A stretch of 64,000 nucleotides of DNA from Phallusia mammillata (GCA_965637545.1 OZ281500.1:20584001-20648000), one strand, 5' to 3'. Shown: positions 30,386-40,875, counted from the first letter of the stretch. The notes: generated from the letters alone by a model not told the origin. Made by a program: numbers and translations.

Positions 30386-32814
30386 CGTGGCAAGCGTTCG
30401 TATGCAGACAGCTGAGACAGGCATTTTTGGCACGTGTCGAAAAACATTTTTGAGAAGTCGGAGTCTGTTTTTGGAAAATCTATTGTTAGGATTGATTCCG
30501 GCTTGCACACTTGCTTTTGTTCACGTGTTTACTTTTCAAAACAGAAAGAGTGACAAGCGCACACCTGCCCACGGAGTTTTACTAAAATATGTGCTGAAAA
30601 TTATTTTGCGTTATTTGTCTTGTCCTGATTTTCACAAATTTAACCGGTGTATAAAATAATTAAATTTTAATAGTTATTACTCAAACATATATTTACTCAC
30701 AATTAAAAAAATCATTTTCAAATATTTTACGTGTTAAAATTTTAGGTTTACGAATATTAGATCCGGCGGGCGAAATGTTTTGCGTGCTCTCCAAAACTGA
30801 ACCCTAGTTACTTTCCTCATTGTTACTTACTAATGCGCTACCATTATTGGCATGTTCCAAACCTAACGAAGTCCGCTTTCCACTGTAAACTCTGTTACCA
30901 TGACTTTACCTACCCTCGTTTTTATAGTGTTCAAACTTTACGTACCGGTCGTTTACCAAATTTATGCACTCAGTACTCGATCTTGCGTTCCCAACTGCGT
31001 AACACGCCTGCCACTGCTTTCGCTTTGACACGAGCCGAACTCGTTTCCCCGCGGCGCAACATCAGTTAAAGTCTGTTTACAGCGACGTCACTCGGCATGA
31101 TCTGTAGTTAGCCCATCGATAACATGGACAGACTCTCGGGCCACCGGTTGACCACTACACAACAACCAACTACGAAATATTGCCGGATGCCTAAAGGTGA
31201 GGCCTGGGTAAACAAGAGCACTTAACTGGTGACTATTGATTTTGTATCGCGGGCGCGGTGATTGGAAAAGGGTGCGTAGCGTACGCTAAGTAACCTAAAG
31301 TGGATTGTAGGACGATTAAACGAGTTAAGCCTAACACCTCTTACCCTCCCACCATCCATGTAATGGCCAATACCCACTGTTTTATCTGCCACCGTGTCAA
31401 CCTTATCGGAGACTTTGGTTTTTTAACGATTTCTCTTGTACGCGTCGAATGTTGAATTAGAACGATTTTATCTTTAACTTTTATTCAGTAAAATTGTATT
31501 GTTTTATTATCATTGCGTTGCATTACACAACAATTGTTATTTATTTATTTTTGCTTCTAACAATAGAATGTATGAAAGATCCAAATACAGTTGATACTTG
31601 GTGTGAGATTCGAAAAATTACCAGACATTTGTCAATTTTACAATTGAGTCCAGAACCATGCCATTAACATAAAACGAAATTACCATGGCAACCAACGATG
31701 CCTAAATAACTGCTTAAGGCCCACATGGTTTCTCGCATTTTAGTTACAAGCTTAAAGTTATAAAAGTAATTAAATAATTCAAACGCGTGCAATAAGGATT
31801 TTGTCAAAATACAACGTGCTTGGTATACTAAGTTATGTAACTGACAATATTTTATGACAAAACTACAAATGTTTCACATACAAAAAGGGATTGAAACTGG
31901 ATAATCTCGATCGCTATAACTGACCAAAACGGTTACAATTTCGACCTAGCTTTACTGTTTTATTCACTTATATTCAATTGCCACCATGCAGTGTTTGAGT
32001 TTAAAATCATCACTATTGCATCTGCACTAAGTTTGAACCTTCTACGAACACCTGACCCAACATTTCTACTCGTACTGGCCTGCCATTGCATGTAAGTGGC
32101 TTCTTTACCCACAAAAACTGTGTGTATAAGAACACCAAATCAAGAGATTCAGTAAATCCCTCGAGCGTTAATTAGCATTTGCTTACAAGGAATTTGTGCG
32201 CGTTGAAATCCGTCGGTTAACGGGGCAATAACTTAAAATATTAGGTGGACACTGATGGGTGAATGTCTCAAATAAAAAAGTTTTTTTGTGGCAAGTGCAT
32301 TTTAGTAAGATATTTGTAATAATCCTCGGCAGAGCGAAATTAATATGATACCTTTATTAGGGGGTCTAATTTACATGTGAGTATATGCAGTAATTGCTGG
32401 GCTTAACGTAGTAGTGGATAAATGTGCATCTTAGTTTAAAAAAAACATTGAAACTTAGACTTGTTGCAATATGCATCGCATATAGGGTCATTGAACATAT
32501 ATATTAGAAAACCTTCAATGCTTTCAAACATGTACAGACTTTCAATCATGTACAACTTATTGTAACCTTCGATCATTTTTTCGTGATGTGTTTTTGTCAG
32601 TGAACAAAACATGTATGAATTTGAACACGAAAATCTCAAATAACGTTTCTTAAACATATGCTTTTATTTGCCTTCGACATTAGACTCAAACAAAATTGCA
32701 AACTATGTGAGTTTAAGCAGAATGCGGCTGTAGGCGACAATGTTGCATCAGTTCACTGCCAAAGCAATTTGCAAAGATATGGTACATAAAAGTTTAGGTA
32801 ATGCACTGCGATTT

Positions 32815-35800
32815 TCAAAACCCAAAATATCTAGGCCTTCTCGGACAAATTTGACACCAATTGAACAAGTTTTTCTGGACGTATTTTCCCCGCACTATTA
32901 CATTCCCTGGTTTGACGTGCATCACATCGCCGAAGACTTGCCGACAGGTAGAAGCTATTTTCATCTCCTTTCGGTTAAGAACATATGACCACACATTCAA
33001 AGTCGAGATGCCACCAATAAACTGTTGGCTGTAATAGAGTGTATAAGAACTTAAAAAAGAAAAAAGAAAAAATTAAGTCTTTGCAGTTTACAAATGAACT
33101 CCACATCTTACATAGACCAATTGTTTCTTTACATAAATTGTATCACAAACAAATTTACGAAATCTACGCATAAAACACATACTAACTGGCGTTTAGTTTA
33201 AGCTGCAATGGTTTCGCAAACGATGTTATTGAGAATTTGTCACCGGCATAAAAATCCTTAGGAAGAATGGATTTCTTTGTCCTAAATAATCTTAATTGGT
33301 GCAAACTTAATATTGCTGATTTTTATGCACGTTAAACAGGACAATGCAAATTGATCTAAAATAGTTAAATTAATGTTCACACCGCCGATCTAACACCGAA
33401 GTAAATTAACGATACATAATAACGCTTCCTTATTTCGCCAATGTCCGCTTTTTACTTACAAGTATTCGAAGCATCCTGGAACACAATCTTGCTCTGCGCC
33501 AAGCATGAGTGACCCTCCGCCTCTGATCACATGTTTATGGGCATGTTTGTGTCTTGAGCGCTGTATTGGTCTACCATCCAAGTAAACGATCGATTCACCA
33601 GTAGCTCCCTCCCAGCTTACACACACAAAACACCACCGACCTTGGGGAAACATTGGTCTTCCTCCTACACACAAGATCATGTTTGGCAATGAGTTTGTAA
33701 GCAGGCTTTGTTTTATTCATTTGTGCAGGTATCTTGAAATCCAAAGCACATTGAAAATAATTTACTTCTACATAATTAAATACTTAAAGTCAGCCAGTGC
33801 AATTGGATACCAGAGTCTTACCCGAAAACTTATCGTCATTAATTCTGTAATGAAAGCCCTCCAGTGGATGTAAATAAAATAAAATTTCGTTGTCTTCTTC
33901 GGGAACTGCATAGCTGAATATTGCAGAATGTTGGTATCTGTGATGAATTAAATAAAGACTAAATTTATTAAAAATAAAAATGTTAAATCAAAAGACATAG
34001 ATTATTGCATTGAAAAAGAAGGGTTTTTTATCGATTGAGAAAAAAAACTAACATTTTTTTAGGAAAACCGATTAATAAAAAATACACGCTGTTTGCAAAT
34101 TAGGCATGTTTTTGTTTTAAGTTTGAAAACACCGTACCGTAGTTCGCTACGAATCCAAACACAGATTGTCATTGCTCTTAAGCTTGGCATAGGAAGATTC
34201 ACTTTTGCCCAGTTCCGGTCGCTTCGATATCGAGGCATTTCAACAATATAAGCATCCGAGTAGCATCCTAAAATACGCTTTTGCATTACTTCGTAACCAC
34301 GAAGGATGTTAAAGAATGCATACCTCGTTCGTATCGAAATGGGGGCCTGACCCATTTTGTAGTAGCTTCTTCGGTAGTAGTTTGTGTTGTAGTTGTTGGT
34401 GTAGTCGTAGTTTGTGTTGTAGTTGTTGATGTAGTCGTAGTTTGTGTTGTAGTTGTTGATGTAGTTGTTGGTGTAGTAGTAGTTTGTGTTGTAGTTGTTG
34501 GTGTAGTAGTAGTAGTTTGTGTTGTAGTTGTTGGTGTAGTAGTAGTTTGTGTTGTAGTTGTTGGTGTAGTTGTTGGTGTAGTAGTAGTTTGTGTTGTAGT
34601 TGTTGGCGTAGTAGTAGTTTGTGTTGTAGTTGTTGGTGTAGTAGTAGTTTGTGTTGTAGTTGTTGGCGTAGTTGTTGGTGTAGTAGTAGTTTGTGTTGTA
34701 GTTGTTGGCGTAGTAGTAGTTTGTGTTGTAGTTGTTGGCGTAGTAGTAGTTTGTGTTGTAGTTGTTGGTGTAGTTGTTGGTGTAGTAGTAGTTGGTGTAG
34801 TAGTAGTTTGTGTTGTAGTTGTTGGCGTAGTTGTTGGTGTAGTAGTAGTTTGTGTTGTAGTTGTTGGCGTAGTAGTAGTTTGTGTTGTAGTTGTTGGTGT
34901 AGTAGTAGTTTGTGTTGTAGTTGTTGGCGTAGTTGTTGGTGTAGTAGTAGTTTGTGTTGTAGTTGTTGGCGTAGTAGTAGTTTGTGTTGTAGTTGTTGGC
35001 GTAGTAGTAGTTTGTGTTGTAGTTGTTGGTGTAGTAGTAGTTTGTGTTGTAGTTGTTGGTGTAGTTGTTGGTGTAGTAGTAGTTTGTGTTGTAGTTGTTG
35101 GCGTAGTAGTAGTTTGTTTAGTCGTTGTTGTTGTAACTCTTGTCGTTGTAGTTATTTCCGCTGCGGAGGTGGTCGGTGGTGCCGTTGGAAGTACGTCTAA
35201 AAGCAAAACAACATGAATTGCAACGTACATACACATAGAAAGGGTTTCTACAAACCTCTCGGGGGTGTTGCTGTTTCAATCTTTTCAGGTGCTCTGATAA
35301 GTTGATTACCTGTTGGTGACAACCAATCCTTGTTTAGGTGTTATAAAGAAGTGACTTAAGCTTTCAGTTTCTTTTAACACTTAGAAATAAAAATGATTTT
35401 TGATGTGAAGCGAGACGTTTACATTTCAATCATTTTTATGTGTTTTGCTTTAGTTTAAACAGGCAATGTTTCAAACTACGTGTTAGAAAGTTGACTTCCT
35501 CAACAAATACCTGGTTGTTGGGTAAGAGTGACATCTACCGGATAAGTTGATTTTGAAACAAGCGTCATAAATAGCGTCAAAGCTGGTCTTCCACTAATCG
35601 ACGATATGACTGCCTCTGCGGTTTGATTTCGAACTGGCCAACCAGCTTGGAGATCAAAGGGATTGAAAAATACTTCTGCCATATCGTTGGTGATATTAAG
35701 AAGGAAATCGTGCAGCGCCTGCGTGTTGTAAAAAATAATAATGGCCATGTAGATTACTTATTATCAATTTATACAAACCTCGTTTGGATCTGTAATCCAG

Positions 35801-38800
35801 GTAGATCCTAACATTAACATGGACCCGTCCTCAGTCTCTAGACGTAGGGTTATGCCTATATCAGTAACCTCGATTTTTAAATGCTTTTCTTCTCCGGGAA
35901 GAAACACGCCTGCATTGTTAAAGTAGTTGTTAGTTTTTACTGTATTAGGCGCCTTAATTGCTGGAGTCAAAGCACAAACCTTTAACTTGAGTTTGATCCA
36001 GTGGCCAAACCGCAGCCTCTGTACACGTTCTGCTCTGGAGCACCGATTGCACAAACTTTAGCGCTCTGAAATAGAAAGAGGTTTAACAAAGAGAATACAA
36101 AACTCGCACTTCAGTGAAACATCAATAATGTCTTACCTGAAGTTTGCAATTTCAAAAACGTGAGTTGATTCCAAACCACTAGCGATCGTGACCAACTCAT
36201 TCCTGTTTACAACCTCAGTTACACCAACAGCAAATACGTTGATACCGGATAAGTGTGCCCTCCTTGAAGCCGCTAAAGAAGATGACATCGTTTAATTTAC
36301 ACCGAAAACTTAGGTAAAAGGCAACGTTGTGAGGAAAATCTCTCTTTTTGTTCATTACTGTAACATGGTACCCTATTTTTGTGTTCGGACTATTTTTCGT
36401 GTACCCTATTATTCGTGTTAATTGTCATCTTAAGATGTTATTGACAAATATGGACTAACCAAACACGTTGTCGTGACTTTGACCATCAGTAACTACGATC
36501 AGAATACGTGGTACAAGCTCAGAAAGTCTCCTCGCTCCTCGCCTTGTCACAAACATGCGGGTAAACACATAGTTGATCGCAAATCCCGTTCTTGTGGTAC
36601 CTCCTTTGTACTTTACCCTGAACAAGTAAAAAAGTATTGTATCAAACTGGTCTGGAAGTAAAATACCACAAACGTGTATCAGTTAAGTTGTTGATTCACT
36701 TAAATTGGACTAGGTTATATAATGTTTGTCACTGTAAAGGTTATGAAGCCTCTTCTTTTTTGCAGAAAGTGGAATGTTTGTAGCGTGTTTTAAAACTGAC
36801 ATGGAGATGTAGTAAGGTTCAAGTGATTTGTCGGAAATTACAATAGCGCTTCATTGCAGGTATAGGGTTTGTAGATATAAACAATATGAATGTTCATTTT
36901 TTGGCCCAGGAATTTTCAAATGGAGTTTCATTTATTTTGGGTTGACAGATTGCCAATCTCTATCATTGTGATCAAAGAACAGTTATTGCCAAATTGATGC
37001 GACTATTTTTAAATGCGGTAGCCTCAAGCGAAGAGAGTTCTATGCCGCTATCTCAAATGCTAGATGTTTTAGATTACGACCTGTATGCCTGTATTACGAA
37101 AAAGATTCACCAAAGACTTGGCATAACAATCCATATTTAGTCCTGTTTTCTATTGTGGAGGTATTATGGTTGCACAAACAGCTTGACATTTGATGGTTAG
37201 TTGTACCTGCGAATAGCATTGAGGAGGGCCGGCTTATTAAGATGTTGACGAAGATAAAACTCGACTCTTGCGGTTCCCGAATACTGCGCCATGCCCACGC
37301 GGGCTCCATTCGTATGAACCTGTGTGAAACAAAGATAGCTGACGTCAATACACGTGATAAAACAAAGTAAATGCGTAGGGCAGATTGTTCATTGCATATT
37401 TGCTGCTCTTGCTTCCCATTTGGTAGGTTAATTTTCATGAAGCAAATGTTTGGGTTTTCTCTTTTAGGTAAGGAATAATGTAAACCTAATAAAGAATGTA
37501 AAAAACTTAAACATTTAGGCTGGAAATTCTCATTTTATGCAGCTTTTAACTATTTCTATAGATTTGTAACCGTAATTTAGCATTGCAATGCCGTATTTTG
37601 TACACTTAAGTTAGTCAAGAGCGTTACATACCGTAAGCGGCTCTACAATTCCCTCCACAAAGTCCATAGCGCGTTTAAAGTCCCGCACACCCACACTTCC
37701 GCTTCCGTCCATCAGCAAAATAAGGTCTACTTTTCCAACCGCGCAAGCTGTGTATAAAAGCGTCACATCCTTGAAGTGATTATTGTTTAAAACGTCATTG
37801 TGCACAGGTGTGCTACTTGTTCAACACCACAAAGTTATGTTTGTTATTTTGTGGCTAAACTTCGTGCACCACAGTGGCTAAATAAAGCTTTAAGTATAGA
37901 AGTTGACATTTCGCAACATGGTAAATAATTTTACCTTGTCAGTTTTTGTAAAGCAACTGGGTTTTGCCGTGCTTCAACACAATGATAAAAGACGATAAGA
38001 GGCCATTAAATCAAACCAAATGTCGCCTCAGGTAAAAACAGCGGAAGCGTTTAGAAAGGTTGAAAAAACATACTTTCATTTTCACGTTGACGTTCGATGA
38101 CACGAACAAACGATGTATTTGAGGGGTCAATAGCTTGACCCAGTATGTTGATTTGACGGTCCTCGCTGTAAAAGTATTTGATCCAGATCACTGCTTGCTC
38201 ATTGATGTCTTTCGGCACCCCTTGGGGTAAGATTGATGTAAGAAACAATCGCGCTGCCAGTCCAGAATAGATGGGCTTGCGAAGGTCCACCCATTTCACA
38301 TTCCTCCAACGAATTCCGAAAACCCGTAGCACCCCTTGATGCTAAAATCAAAACGACATATAGTTATCAGAGTAGTAAACGGTCGTGCGAAAGAACCCAA
38401 GGTACAAGCCTCGGCCCGAACCCAATTTAAGCAAAGCCCAAAAGTTGGTGAAAATGCGGCAAAAATGATGCAGAGTGTGAAGTTAGGCCCGAATCAACAC
38501 CATTTTATTAAAACTAAACCCTCAACAAAATTAGGCCCAACTCTAACCTTAATGATTTATGATATGAACATAAGTTCAATAACAAACCTGTGGGTTGAGA
38601 TCTGGTGACTTCGTAGCATTAAATGTCTCTTCATCGACGCCCCATATACCACCATAAAAGTATGGATCTTGATAAGTCCCCGGCATTGTACCTAAAAAAT
38701 ACCATTGGAGCGTTAATGCACGTTTTCTAAATAGGCATATCTGCACGATTCTGATGCTTACAAATATACAGTGCAGCCATTTCCTCTTGAAGATGCCAGG

Positions 38801-40242
38801 CAGCGGTTTAGGCCGGGTATTTGGTGCTAAAATATTAATTTCTCCCACATTGTTTCACAAAACAGGTTACGGTAAGACCTGTTCATCAGGTTTTAAAGCC
38901 ATCAGAGGCTGGGCTGCATATTTTTTAAAACGCCTTAACTTTTATCCCACACAATCCACGGCCTTGCGTATCTGCAGCTTAATCTTCGATCATTTACCCT
39001 CGCACCTGTTTGTTAGTGGAAGATGCATTTAAAAAAGTCTAATAACTTTTGAAATGAACATTTGAATCTTTAGATCAGTAGATTTGGTCTACGATTATTT
39101 GTTTTTCCCCAAGTTGTTGTCAAATCGAATAAAACATACACAAGCTCACAGGAGGTTATTTGTATCCTTTCTTTCGTGTTTGGACTTTACTTCATACAAC
39201 AGCTTGTTGAGTATAATAATGGAAACAAACGCGAGACATTAAACGGGCCTAAAATTGTCTAGACCCACAATTTTGTTTAAAGAAATTAGGCCAGAAACTT
39301 AAATTTACCTTACGACTTTAATCAGGCCGAGGATGCATTCAAAAATTACGACTTCAATAAGGCAGAATGTGAAATCAAAAATTATGACTCAAATGATGCC
39401 AAGGGTGGGGTCAAAACTGAATCAAGTCGTTTTCTTCCGCCCGGCCCAAAACCGAAACAGGATCAAATACCCAGCCTGGACAGTAGAAGGGAAGTAACAC
39501 TGGAATGCGCGTTTTGTGTAAAACTTACCATCTCGTGTCTGCACGAATGCAAGTCGCCTTAGGAACAAATAATCATTGGAGAAAACTTCGGACGCGTCCA
39601 GTTTCTGCACGACCGCTTGAACAACCTCAGAACCTGCAGAGCACAAACATCGCCGGGGCATTAGGGATTTGTTGGCAATAAAAACGTGCACTGTTATACG
39701 ATGAATATGCAAATCTGTCCAGGGTCAACTGGATGACACTTTGTGACCTCGTCTAGTCGTGTTAAAGCAAACAGGGATCCAATTTTGCCATTGTAATTAG
39801 AAAATTTTGGATTTAAAACATTTCACTTCATGGAAGATACAGTGCCTTGGTGGCATGTTCACTTTGGGTAGATTAACATTGAAATTAGTAAAACCCTGGC
39901 AAAAAAATTCCATTTGATACAATCTTAATGTATATTACAATACCAAATTAATCATTGTTAAATTTTATCAAAAAAAAAAATGTAGCGTTTTTATCAAACA
40001 ACCATGGTTAATGCATTAGAACCTTGTTTCAAATCATCGCTAATTCAATTTTGATTCAATATTTTATTTGCCACGCTATGAAGTTAATATAGTTGCACAA
40101 CTAAATTCACTACTTTTTCGTATTTGTTTATAATCCTACCTTTCGCTGTTGGCCACAAGGTGTAATCAATCGGTCCAGTAAAATAATATTCGGCATTTGC
40201 ACAAGTTGCCAGTACGATCAGCAAAAATGAAATGATCTTCAT
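32815..40242 (-). CDS. Secreted mosaic protein, ~1039 aa: signal peptide, putative lysozyme-like domain, VWA, unassigned domain, Thr-rich mucin stalk, pentraxin domain
   Basis: Exons (minus strand) 40242-40140, 39633-39529, 38691-38588, 38341-38074, 37747-37632, 37319-37207, 36617-36460, 36272-36137, 36065-35980, 35909-35779, 35718-35511, 35309-35256, 35196-34324, 34267-34138, 33937-33822, 33664-33460, 33028-32815 (TGA); 3120 nt, phase-consistent. Signal peptide MKIISFLLIVLATCANA. VWA: DLILLMDGSGSV...GGTTRTG...IVVTDGQS. Pentraxin: LRAMTICVW, FSYAVPEEDNE, VCVSWEG, LMLGAEQD, NVWSYVL. Confidence 0.9.
34375..35130 (-). repeat. Coding minisatellite encoding PTTTTQTTTT / PTTT mucin-like repeats
   Basis: Near-perfect 30-bp units (GTAGTAGTAGTTTGTGTTGTAGTTGTTGGY on the + strand) interspersed with 12-bp units; lies inside exon 35196-34324. 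Confidence 0.95.
38368..38548. mobile_element. MITE, CAGAGTT-TIR family, filling most of intron 3 of the mosaic gene
   Basis: Begins CAGAGTAGTAAACGG (compare CAGAGTTGTAAACGG at 47157), ends near CCAACTCTA; shares internal sequence with 5765-5977. Confidence 0.65.
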
Positions 40243-40875
40243 TCCTGATTGCAGCTGATTTTGTCACCACAATACCACGAAAATAAACTCCTTAACCGCT
40301 GTAAAAAAAAACTATGCTATTACCTCTAAACGTTAATAAAATGTAAGGCCTGCGTTTTGCAGAAATCACAATTGAACCTGTCGCTTACAATATGTATATA
40401 CGTGGTCTAACTAAAGAATGGCGAAAGGAAGAATTCTCGGTCATCAGTACCTGTGTCTCTTTCCCGTGCCGATGAAGACTGAACGGTTTATTCTTGGTGT
40501 TGCTGCATTTTGTAGAAAATTGCTCCCGTTTCGTAATGGCCGCGGACGAAAGGTCACGAGCGCTACACGACTATCTCCTGGCAGTAAATACATTTGCACG
40601 TGCGACCCGAACACTGAGCGTCTCGTGTAAGATCAGCAGGCAACAATGGCGAAGTGGCGTTATCGCCGAGTTGGTTTATTTCCACTGTTAACCGAAGTAT
40701 CTTATCTAAAGCATGCATCAGCTTTAAATTCGCAACTGTGTTTTCATTGGGCGCAACGTTTTGTTGAAAAACCTGTTGGTTTTAAGCTATGGCTAAGGTG
40801 CATAGAAATAAACATGAGCGCTGTGTAAAGATTTTTGATCACTTAATAACGCTTTTGGGATTTCTATGTTTAATG

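Follow-up and report, generated by a model that had tools for sequence, protein, structure and literature searches.

SVEP1 (polydom), which combines Sushi, VWA, EGF, and pentraxin domains, is an extracellular VWA and pentraxin mosaic, as is the predicted product of the gene described here. This gene lies on the minus strand (positions 40242..32815) of a 64,000-nucleotide stretch of the genome of the sea squirt Phallusia mammillata (GCA_965637545.1, OZ281500.1:20584001-20648000), hereafter referred to as the window; coordinates below refer to the minus strand unless otherwise stated. SVEP1 lacks the lysozyme-like head, the jelly roll, and the mucin-like segment of the window gene, whereas no exon of the window gene matched a Sushi/CCP, EGF, or HYR model in Pfam. 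Annotation pipelines would probably name the gene ‘SVEP1-like’ (compare PMC9953650). Short and long pentraxins (CRP, SAP, the Limulus SAP-like protein, neuronal pentraxins, and PTX3) share with the window protein the pentraxin domain, its two cysteines, and the DN..EQD..Q residues, and in the long pentraxins this domain likewise stands C-terminal behind another region. That N-terminal partner is a coiled coil in the long pentraxins, whereas in the window protein it comprises ~800 residues of head, VWA, jelly roll, and mucin.

Other described proteins resemble the N-terminal half. Members of the Pif/BMSP family carry VWA followed by CBM_14 and laminin-G domains and lack the head (PMC11291548), whereas neither CBM_14 nor LamG was matched in the window exons with Pfam. 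Rusticalin, from Styela rustica, is an ascidian secreted protein that contains a phage-type peptidoglycan-hydrolase domain (PMC6339383), although this domain belongs to another enzyme family (L-Ala-D-Glu peptidases) and stands in another architecture. SLT/GH23 lytic transglycosylases and goose-type lysozyme resemble the head at the level of fold (Z 6-9 over 110-130 residues, root-mean-square deviation ~3-3.6 Å) and carry an E-[ST] motif at a helix end and, after it, a G-x-[IL]-[WM]-Q hairpin, but the window protein has Gln in place of the Glu, and the head gave no significant Pfam or PDB sequence match to them.

A sea-squirt gene for a secreted mosaic protein is probably real. Behind a signal peptide it would encode, in order, a lysozyme-like head, a VWA domain, a jelly roll, a mucin-like segment, and a pentraxin, which is one module more than the four that the first-pass annotation of the window had counted, the jelly roll being the extra one. 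We place the probability that these five modules form one secreted mosaic gene whose product acts as a bridge between glycans and pentraxin ligands at about 0.6. The gene model was assembled from stop-free segments, splice-site scans, direct reading of the DNA, and homology; searches were conducted exon by exon or on database homologs, and fold models were made of homologs. The resulting open reading frame (ORF) is phase-consistent, begins with an ATG at 40242, ends with a TGA at 32817-32815, and is divided among 16 coding exons separated by introns that are all GT-AG. These exons total 3099 nt, or 1032 codons plus the stop, with zero stops inside exons or in split codons. The phase-consistent ORF and both of its ends agree with those annotated previously, but the earlier count of 17 exons is not, as 16 were found. 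Junctions between exons 1 and 11 are collinear with the head family consensus and with starfish proteins (P0221-P0225), and those between exons 13 and 16 are collinear with pentraxins.

Exon 1 (40140..40242) contains the ATG, a signal peptide of ordinary type as read from the exon (MKIISFLLIVLATCANA), and the first residues of the head (..DYTLWPTAK). Exon 2 (39529..39633) encodes a head helix (..LFLRRLAFVQTRD), exon 3 (38588..38691) the hairpin motif YGGIWGVD, which corresponds to GGIWQVD in the family, and exon 4 (38074..38341) the C-terminal half of the head (FGIRW..DLRKPIYSGLAARLFL..). Exon 4 alone retrieved 326 relatives at E<=1e-3 from among 1.84 billion protein representatives. The consensus of the head family reads ..D.T..P.A.G..VV.AVV..LRRIA.VE[ST].DG...TYR..Y.GGIWQVD...FGI.W..V.W.DLRKPLYSGLAARL.., and exons 1-4 agree with it over all three of their junctions, including the motif D-x-T-x-x-P-x-A-x-G-x-x-VV that spans the junction of exons 1 and 2. 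A homolog from Haliotis (P0132:1-182) aligns with exons 2-4 at 33-59% identity, and the 240-Mb genome contains one copy of the head.

An AlphaFold2 model of the Haliotis head homolog, with 37 relatives in the alignment, reached a mean predicted local distance difference test (pLDDT) score of 92. When this model was compared with 48,161 chains using VIA-align, the top 50 matches were all lysozyme-superfamily enzymes (Z 9.3 to 4.5, 100-130 aligned residues), among them GH73, MltE, MltF, GH23 chitinase, Slt70, destabilase, and g- and c-type lysozymes. Since a VIA-align Z below 8 is not decisive by itself, the weight of this result lies in the uniformity of the match list. Foldseek returned weak matches of the same model to lytic transglycosylases and GH23/GH19 enzymes. 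Judged on the model of the homolog, a lysozyme-like fold for the head is thus supported, and because the VIA-align list is uniform, the earlier description of the N-terminal domain as lysozyme-like holds at the level of fold. Exons 2-4 matched neither Pfam nor PDB sequences, a profile of the family likewise matched no PDB sequence, the family has no Pfam or NCBIfam model, and a literature search recovered no paper on it.

The head of the window protein appears to have lost its catalytic general acid. The first position of the E-[ST] motif is Glu in 148 of 174 family domains and Gln in 9, and S or T follows in 172 of the 174; the alignment places Gln at this position of exon 2 (FVQTRDG). In the model of the Haliotis homolog the motif Glu sits at a helix end. 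The Pfam SLT model (PF01464) matched no window exon, and its best match to a relative, P0004 (17.8 bits, below the cut-off of 21.3), covers exactly the ES...GGIWQ stretch. Three features point to the Gln position as the catalytic one: the E-[ST] motif, the location at the helix end, and this weak SLT match on a relative. The window head further carries Gly where the GGIWQ motif has its Gln. E-to-Q mutants of the lysozyme-like fold have been crystallized with glycan bound, according to the titles of entries 4hjy and 3w6d.

The VWA domain is encoded by exons 5 (37632..37747), 6 (37207..37319), 7 (36460..36617), 8 (36137..36272), and 9 (36011..36065). Exons 5 through 8 gave four collinear matches to Pfam VWA (PF00092), at profile positions 1-34, 33-70, 62-119, and 120-166, respectively (E 1.8e-5 to 3.4e-10). 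The metal-ion-dependent adhesion site (MIDAS) is intact, with DGSGS in exon 5 and with its Thr (GGTTRTG) and Asp (VVTDGQS) in exon 7, as aligned with the VWA domains of the starfish proteins. The four collinear matches, together with DGSGS, T, and TDG, confirm the VWA domain with intact MIDAS that had been proposed. Exon 9 contributes the final VWA helix and a conserved Cys (ALKFVQSVLQSRTCTEAA), and its donor at 36011 was selected by homology over an alternative at 35980. Three in-phase splice solutions exist in the region of exons 9 and 10, of which 36065-36011 plus 35952-35779, with a 58-nt intron, is preferred because of homology to relatives. Of the other two, 36065-35980 plus 35960-35779 was set aside for requiring a 19-nt intron, and 36065-35980 plus 35891-35779 for losing 21 residues that match the family profile.

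The ~150-residue domain that follows the VWA, previously left unassigned, can be assigned to a jelly roll. Its first half is encoded by exon 10 (35779..35952), which matches positions 7-59 of a profile of 24 relatives (25.5 bits), and its second half by exon 11 (35511..35718), which matches positions 60-95 and directly continues exon 10. Both exons align with the region that follows the VWA in the starfish proteins; exon 10 matched Acanthaster P0002 by BLASTP (E 1e-5), and the sequence across the exon 10/11 junction (..PNE/ALHDFLL..) is unbroken in that protein. With a profile derived from starfish sequences, the jelly roll was found directly behind the VWA of many relatives, some of them molluscan. 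For starfish P0002:572-735, an alignment that also contained the window exons gave a model (pLDDT 84) in which eight strands form a sandwich and one loop is disordered. Foldseek matches of this model included the ColG collagen-binding domain (CBD; 5.5e-4), PliG (7.8e-4), and the PPC domain 5sv5 (7e-3), as well as the GOLD and SID1 ectodomain sandwiches. Because of the homolog model and these matches, exons 10-11 are assigned to a PPC/collagenase-CBD-like jelly roll as modeled, although they gave no Pfam match above threshold. PliG, the second-best match, is a bacterial protein that inhibits g-type lysozyme, and the head of the same protein is lysozyme-like; the likeness probably reflects just a shared fold. 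The disordered loop carries an RxRR/RRRR furin-like stretch in most relatives (P0002, P0222-P0225, P0127, P0084, and P0014), where the window protein reads PVRNQT.

The mucin-like segment is encoded by a single exon, exon 12 (34324..35196; 873 nt), which holds 290 whole codons, is of phase 1-1, encodes 73% Thr, and consists of ~26 copies of a 30-nt unit (TTTTPTTTTQ). This bears out the Thr-rich stalk proposed earlier, then put at ~270 residues. No exon matched the Pfam models for the modules of gel-forming mucins (VWD, C8, TIL, and CTCK), and the mucin character is confined to this exon of the Pro/Thr/Ser (PTS) type. Long Val/Cys-rich ORFs on the plus strand at 34281-35216 were rejected as genes, as they are mirror images of the Thr-repeat exon.

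A 35-nt intron (34289..34323, GT..AG) would be required to connect the mucin exon with the pentraxin. Exon 13 (34138..34288) encodes the first pentraxin strands with the first conserved Cys (..AMTICVWIRSEL), exon 14 (33822..33937) includes FSYAVPEEDNEILFY and the Asp-Asn of the calcium site, exon 15 (33460..33664) contains CVSW, a partial signature with the second Cys, and the calcium-site EQD, and exon 16 (32815..33028) encodes the last strands (QQFIGGISTLNVWSYVL..) and the TGA. A likely polyadenylation signal, AATAAA, follows at 32663..32668, ~147 nt past the stop. Exons 14, 15, and 16 gave three collinear matches to Pfam Pentaxin (PF00354), at positions 40-74, 84-139, and 141-189, respectively, the best single exon at E 4.6e-8. 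Exon 13 matched residues 2-38 of the crystallized domain of neuronal pentraxin-2 (E 0.0025), and because it supplies the residues that precede the Pfam-matched exons, exons 13-16 are considered a complete pentraxin. Exon 14 aligns with residues 50-77 of human CRP and keeps DNE, matching CRP 60-62, while exon 15 matched the Limulus SAP-like pentraxin (E 7e-7), its EQD aligning with the EQD found in both SAP-like and neuronal pentraxins. We take the calcium-site residues of CRP to be Asp60, Asn61, Glu138, Gln139, and Asp140. The pentraxin signature H-x-C-x-[ST]-W-x-[ST] reads FVCVSWEG, such that C, S, and W are kept while His is replaced by Phe and the last S/T by Gly. The C-terminal pentraxin of the first-pass annotation is thereby substantiated, with the calcium-site residues DN and EQD kept. 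A second pentraxin locus in the genome (C4:15225170) is too divergent for a comparison of intron positions.

Among the closest relatives of the N-terminal half are starfish proteins (Acanthaster XP_022080169.1, or P0002, and P0220-P0225), which have the same order of head, VWA with MIDAS, and jelly roll, are collinear with exons 2-11, and bear a Thr-rich stretch after the jelly roll, at the position of the mucin exon in the window gene. They are ~560-570 residues in length and differ from the window protein in lacking the mucin exon and pentraxin and in having heads that keep the Glu. Their database names are ‘uncharacterized’ or the misnomers collagen, integrin, or VWA2-like. The C-termini of P0221-P0225 and P0002 end in ~20 hydrophobic residues behind a Thr/Pro-rich linker, which may resemble a glycosylphosphatidylinositol-anchor signal. 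Molluscs yielded 68 head-VWA proteins (e.g., Haliotis XP_067662560.1 and a Saccostrea ‘matrilin-2-like’ protein), in which the head is directly followed by VWA and usually by the jelly roll, as in the window gene; in contrast, their tails are CBM_14 (peritrophin-A), EGF, C-type lectin, or LPMO_10, and PF00354 is found in none. A placement of these mollusc relatives in the PifS1 shell-matrix subfamily was rejected, as the insertion before the VWA in PifS1 is low-complexity sequence.

Among ~110 multidomain relatives examined, none contained a pentraxin. The suggestion in the first-pass annotation that the architecture is undescribed therefore stands for the whole order of modules, found in none of these relatives, but not for head, VWA, and jelly roll, which are already widespread. 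As judged from sequence comparisons, these three constitute a widespread but uncharacterized bilaterian core, and the mucin and pentraxin tail is what would be new here. The architecture would thus be new as a whole, yet it would be a variant within an existing uncharacterized family and not a system of a new kind.

Members of the head family were identified in molluscs, starfish, mites, annelids, and phages. Four phage matches carry a complete head domain at the C-terminus of large proteins, with 35-39% identity to animal heads over ~160 residues and with all motifs kept. One of these, P0054 (L001:8001-10562), is encoded on a T7-like contig, where a gp14-like gene and a gene for a 1514-residue protein flank it, in the slot of the internal virion (ejection) protein gp15. 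In PHROGs the domain corresponds to phrog_3108, annotated as ‘unknown function’, whose profile matched the phage members at 1e-17 to 1e-19 and the animal proteins P0132 and P0221 at 1.3e-4 and 2.8e-4, respectively. The profile matched no single window exon, and the tie to the window gene runs through alignments with relatives. In cultured phages the family member is a stand-alone protein of ~140-160 residues. In Klebsiella phage phiKO2 it is Gp54 (L002:2956-3447), encoded after the holin-like Gp53, which has three membrane helices, and before the membrane-anchored Gp55. Phage phiKO2 has been recorded with a two-component spanin (PMC6139136). The position of its gene suggests that Gp54 may be the endolysin, and phrog_3108 looks like an unannotated family of endolysins and ejection lysins. 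Phage phrog_3108 proteins carry the domain of the animal heads with all of its motifs; in contrast to the window protein, they are stand-alone or form the end of a virion protein, are intronless, and keep the Glu.

In a quick tree of 61 chosen domains, from which most unnamed matches were left out, the named animal head domains formed one cluster with the phage domains outside it (Shimodaira-Hasegawa-like approximate likelihood ratio test support of 88). This separation of animal from phage heads is suggestive. A more ambitious scenario, which we consider tentative and on balance doubtful, is that a muralytic domain of the phage (phrog_3108) type entered animals once, became the head of a bilaterian VWA family, and in this lineage turned into a catalytically dead lectin, coupled by a mucin rod to a calcium-dependent pentraxin, thereby giving a two-headed molecule for pattern recognition or opsonization of a type not described before.

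Should the five modules belong to one gene, its front 560 residues would represent the local member of an old bilaterian head-VWA-jelly-roll family. The linker, short and Thr-rich in starfish, would have grown here into the 290-residue mucin exon of phase 1-1, and a hydrophobic tail of the starfish kind would have been replaced by a pentraxin that begins after a phase-1 intron. The head, with Gln in place of the general-acid Glu, would probably not cut but would hold beta-1,4-linked chains of the N-acetylglucosamine/N-acetylmuramic acid type (peptidoglycan or chitin-like) as a lectin. Loss of cutting is proposed because the Glu is Gln, and retained glycan binding is proposed by analogy to MltE and a GH23 chitinase in their crystallized E-to-Q forms. 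The VWA may make metal-dependent contacts with proteins, the stalk, if O-glycosylated, would keep the two ends apart, and the pentraxin may bind a second ligand via calcium and may oligomerize. Both secretion and O-glycosylation of the stalk are predicted from sequence. The whole protein could then cross-link particles or matrix, or form a coat on them, in mucus, the gut lumen, the tunic, or blood, such that a glycan- or microbe-binding bridge with a role in pattern recognition or mucus is a plausible function, in line with the role that had been proposed from the domain order.

Of the alternatives, the one that survives best retains a single gene with a purely structural product, a matrix or tunic/gut-mucus scaffold akin to the chitin-associated mollusc relatives and without a part in microbe recognition. 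The chitin-binding CBM_14, LPMO_10, C-type lectin, or EGF tails of the mollusc proteins point in this direction, as does the organization of chitin matrices by VWA proteins of the Pif/BMSP type (PMC11291548), and a mucin stalk is compatible with a gel or matrix protein. However, Pif/BMSP proteins have no head, and the ‘long insertion’ of PifS1 is the low-complexity sequence noted above. The pentraxin also argues against a purely structural role, as pentraxins with an intact calcium site, such as CRP, SAP, and PTX3, are mostly soluble ligand binders. A structural role and the bridging model are inseparable at the sequence level; we regard a purely structural role as possible but unlikely.

Several observations weigh against a single bridging gene, most of them concerning its continuity. 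The weakest links are the joins of exon 11 to the mucin exon and of the mucin exon to exon 13, both of which lack support from homology. The first is of phase 1, has an acceptor with a strong polypyrimidine tract, and is analogous to the passage into the Thr-rich linker of starfish. The second requires the 35-nt intron (gtatgc...acgaag), which is the shortest of the gene, the next being 58, 60, and 71 nt. If this intron is not spliced, the frame ends at a TAA (34288-34286) that overlaps an ATG. When proteins were searched for words of the first pentraxin exon, with the aim of catching ORFs of spliced transcripts, none turned up, and no tunicate ortholog or relative of the head was found among the library matches examined. 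The equivalence of the Gln with the catalytic Glu rests on motif and helix position, apart from which it has the sub-threshold SLT match. Finally, one run (X5) contains a share of 0.09 of the gene's words, near the 0.077 expected from the four pentraxin exons alone, which could reflect low coverage or a pentraxin-only transcript.

Another reading of the joins is that there are two transcription units, a head-VWA-jelly-roll(-mucin) gene and a separate pentraxin or mucin-pentraxin message arising by trans-splicing or from an internal start. The first gene would then end at the TAA at 34288-34286 or, earlier, behind exon 11, where a stop follows ..QQPGIC. Such an arrangement would account for the unusually short intron, for an acceptor AG that lies 2 nt before an ATG (AG/TAATG), and for the word share of run X5, and it would accord with the starfish relatives, which end shortly after the jelly roll. 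The intron just upstream of the mucin exon also contains an in-frame ATG followed by a hydrophobic stretch (MCMYVAIHVVLLL.., 35197-35236), which could serve as the internal start of a mucin-pentraxin product should the intron remain unspliced.

Other features count against separate units. A separate pentraxin would begin MQKRILGCYS.. and would lack a signal peptide, though its disulfide cysteines and calcium site are kept, and no AATAAA occurs in the 60 nt before the pentraxin acceptor. Phases are compatible at both mucin junctions, the mucin exon is symmetric (1-1), and the pentraxin portion begins after a phase-1 intron. In CRP and SAP genes the pentraxin likewise starts after a phase-1 intron. 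Eight small, transcriptome-sized runs from three studies, presumed to be RNA, contain 0.21-0.26 of the gene's words, where 0.24 is expected from all non-mucin exons, 0.164 from the core alone, and 0.077 from the pentraxin exons alone. These shares require both halves and fit their expression, though not necessarily on one RNA. Two transcription units thus appear improbable relative to one gene.

Least likely, and quite improbable in our view, is a single gene whose head keeps enzymatic activity, as a muramidase, lytic transglycosylase, or chitinase, making the product an antibacterial or matrix-remodeling hydrolase tethered by VWA and pentraxin rather than a lectin: the fold and the phage relatives indicate cell-wall cleavage, the other family motifs (GGIW.VD and DLRKP.YSGLAARL) are kept, and Gln occurs in nine other natural members, but Glu occupies the position in 85% of domains, with S/T next to it in nearly all, as expected of the single general acid of the superfamily, entry titles describe the deposited E-to-Q forms of MltE, Slt, and a GH23 chitinase as inactive mutants, and the Gln of GGIWQ is altered too.

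Two further features were recorded upstream of the gene. A T tract followed by AG (ttttttttacag, 40299-40311) lies 56 nt upstream of the ATG and may belong to an intron in the 5' untranslated region or mark a spliced-leader acceptor. Further upstream on the minus strand, an open frame at 44176-44886 matches Pfam FGF (E 6.8e-8, profile positions 44-67) and represents an exon of an FGF-like gene ~4 kb from the gene described here.

If the five modules are encoded on one transcript, the gene would exemplify an invertebrate chordate building a new secreted recognition or adhesion protein through exon shuffling, in which a mucin exon of phase 1-1 and a pentraxin were added to an old three-domain core. 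The head is perhaps more important than the gene itself, as it represents a lysozyme-like family common to phage lysis and ejection proteins and to many secreted animal VWA proteins. Head-VWA proteins number in the dozens per mollusc genome, and the head offers a testable route to their function, with that of the window protein providing a natural Glu-to-Gln ‘dead enzyme’ to set beside its Glu-bearing relatives.

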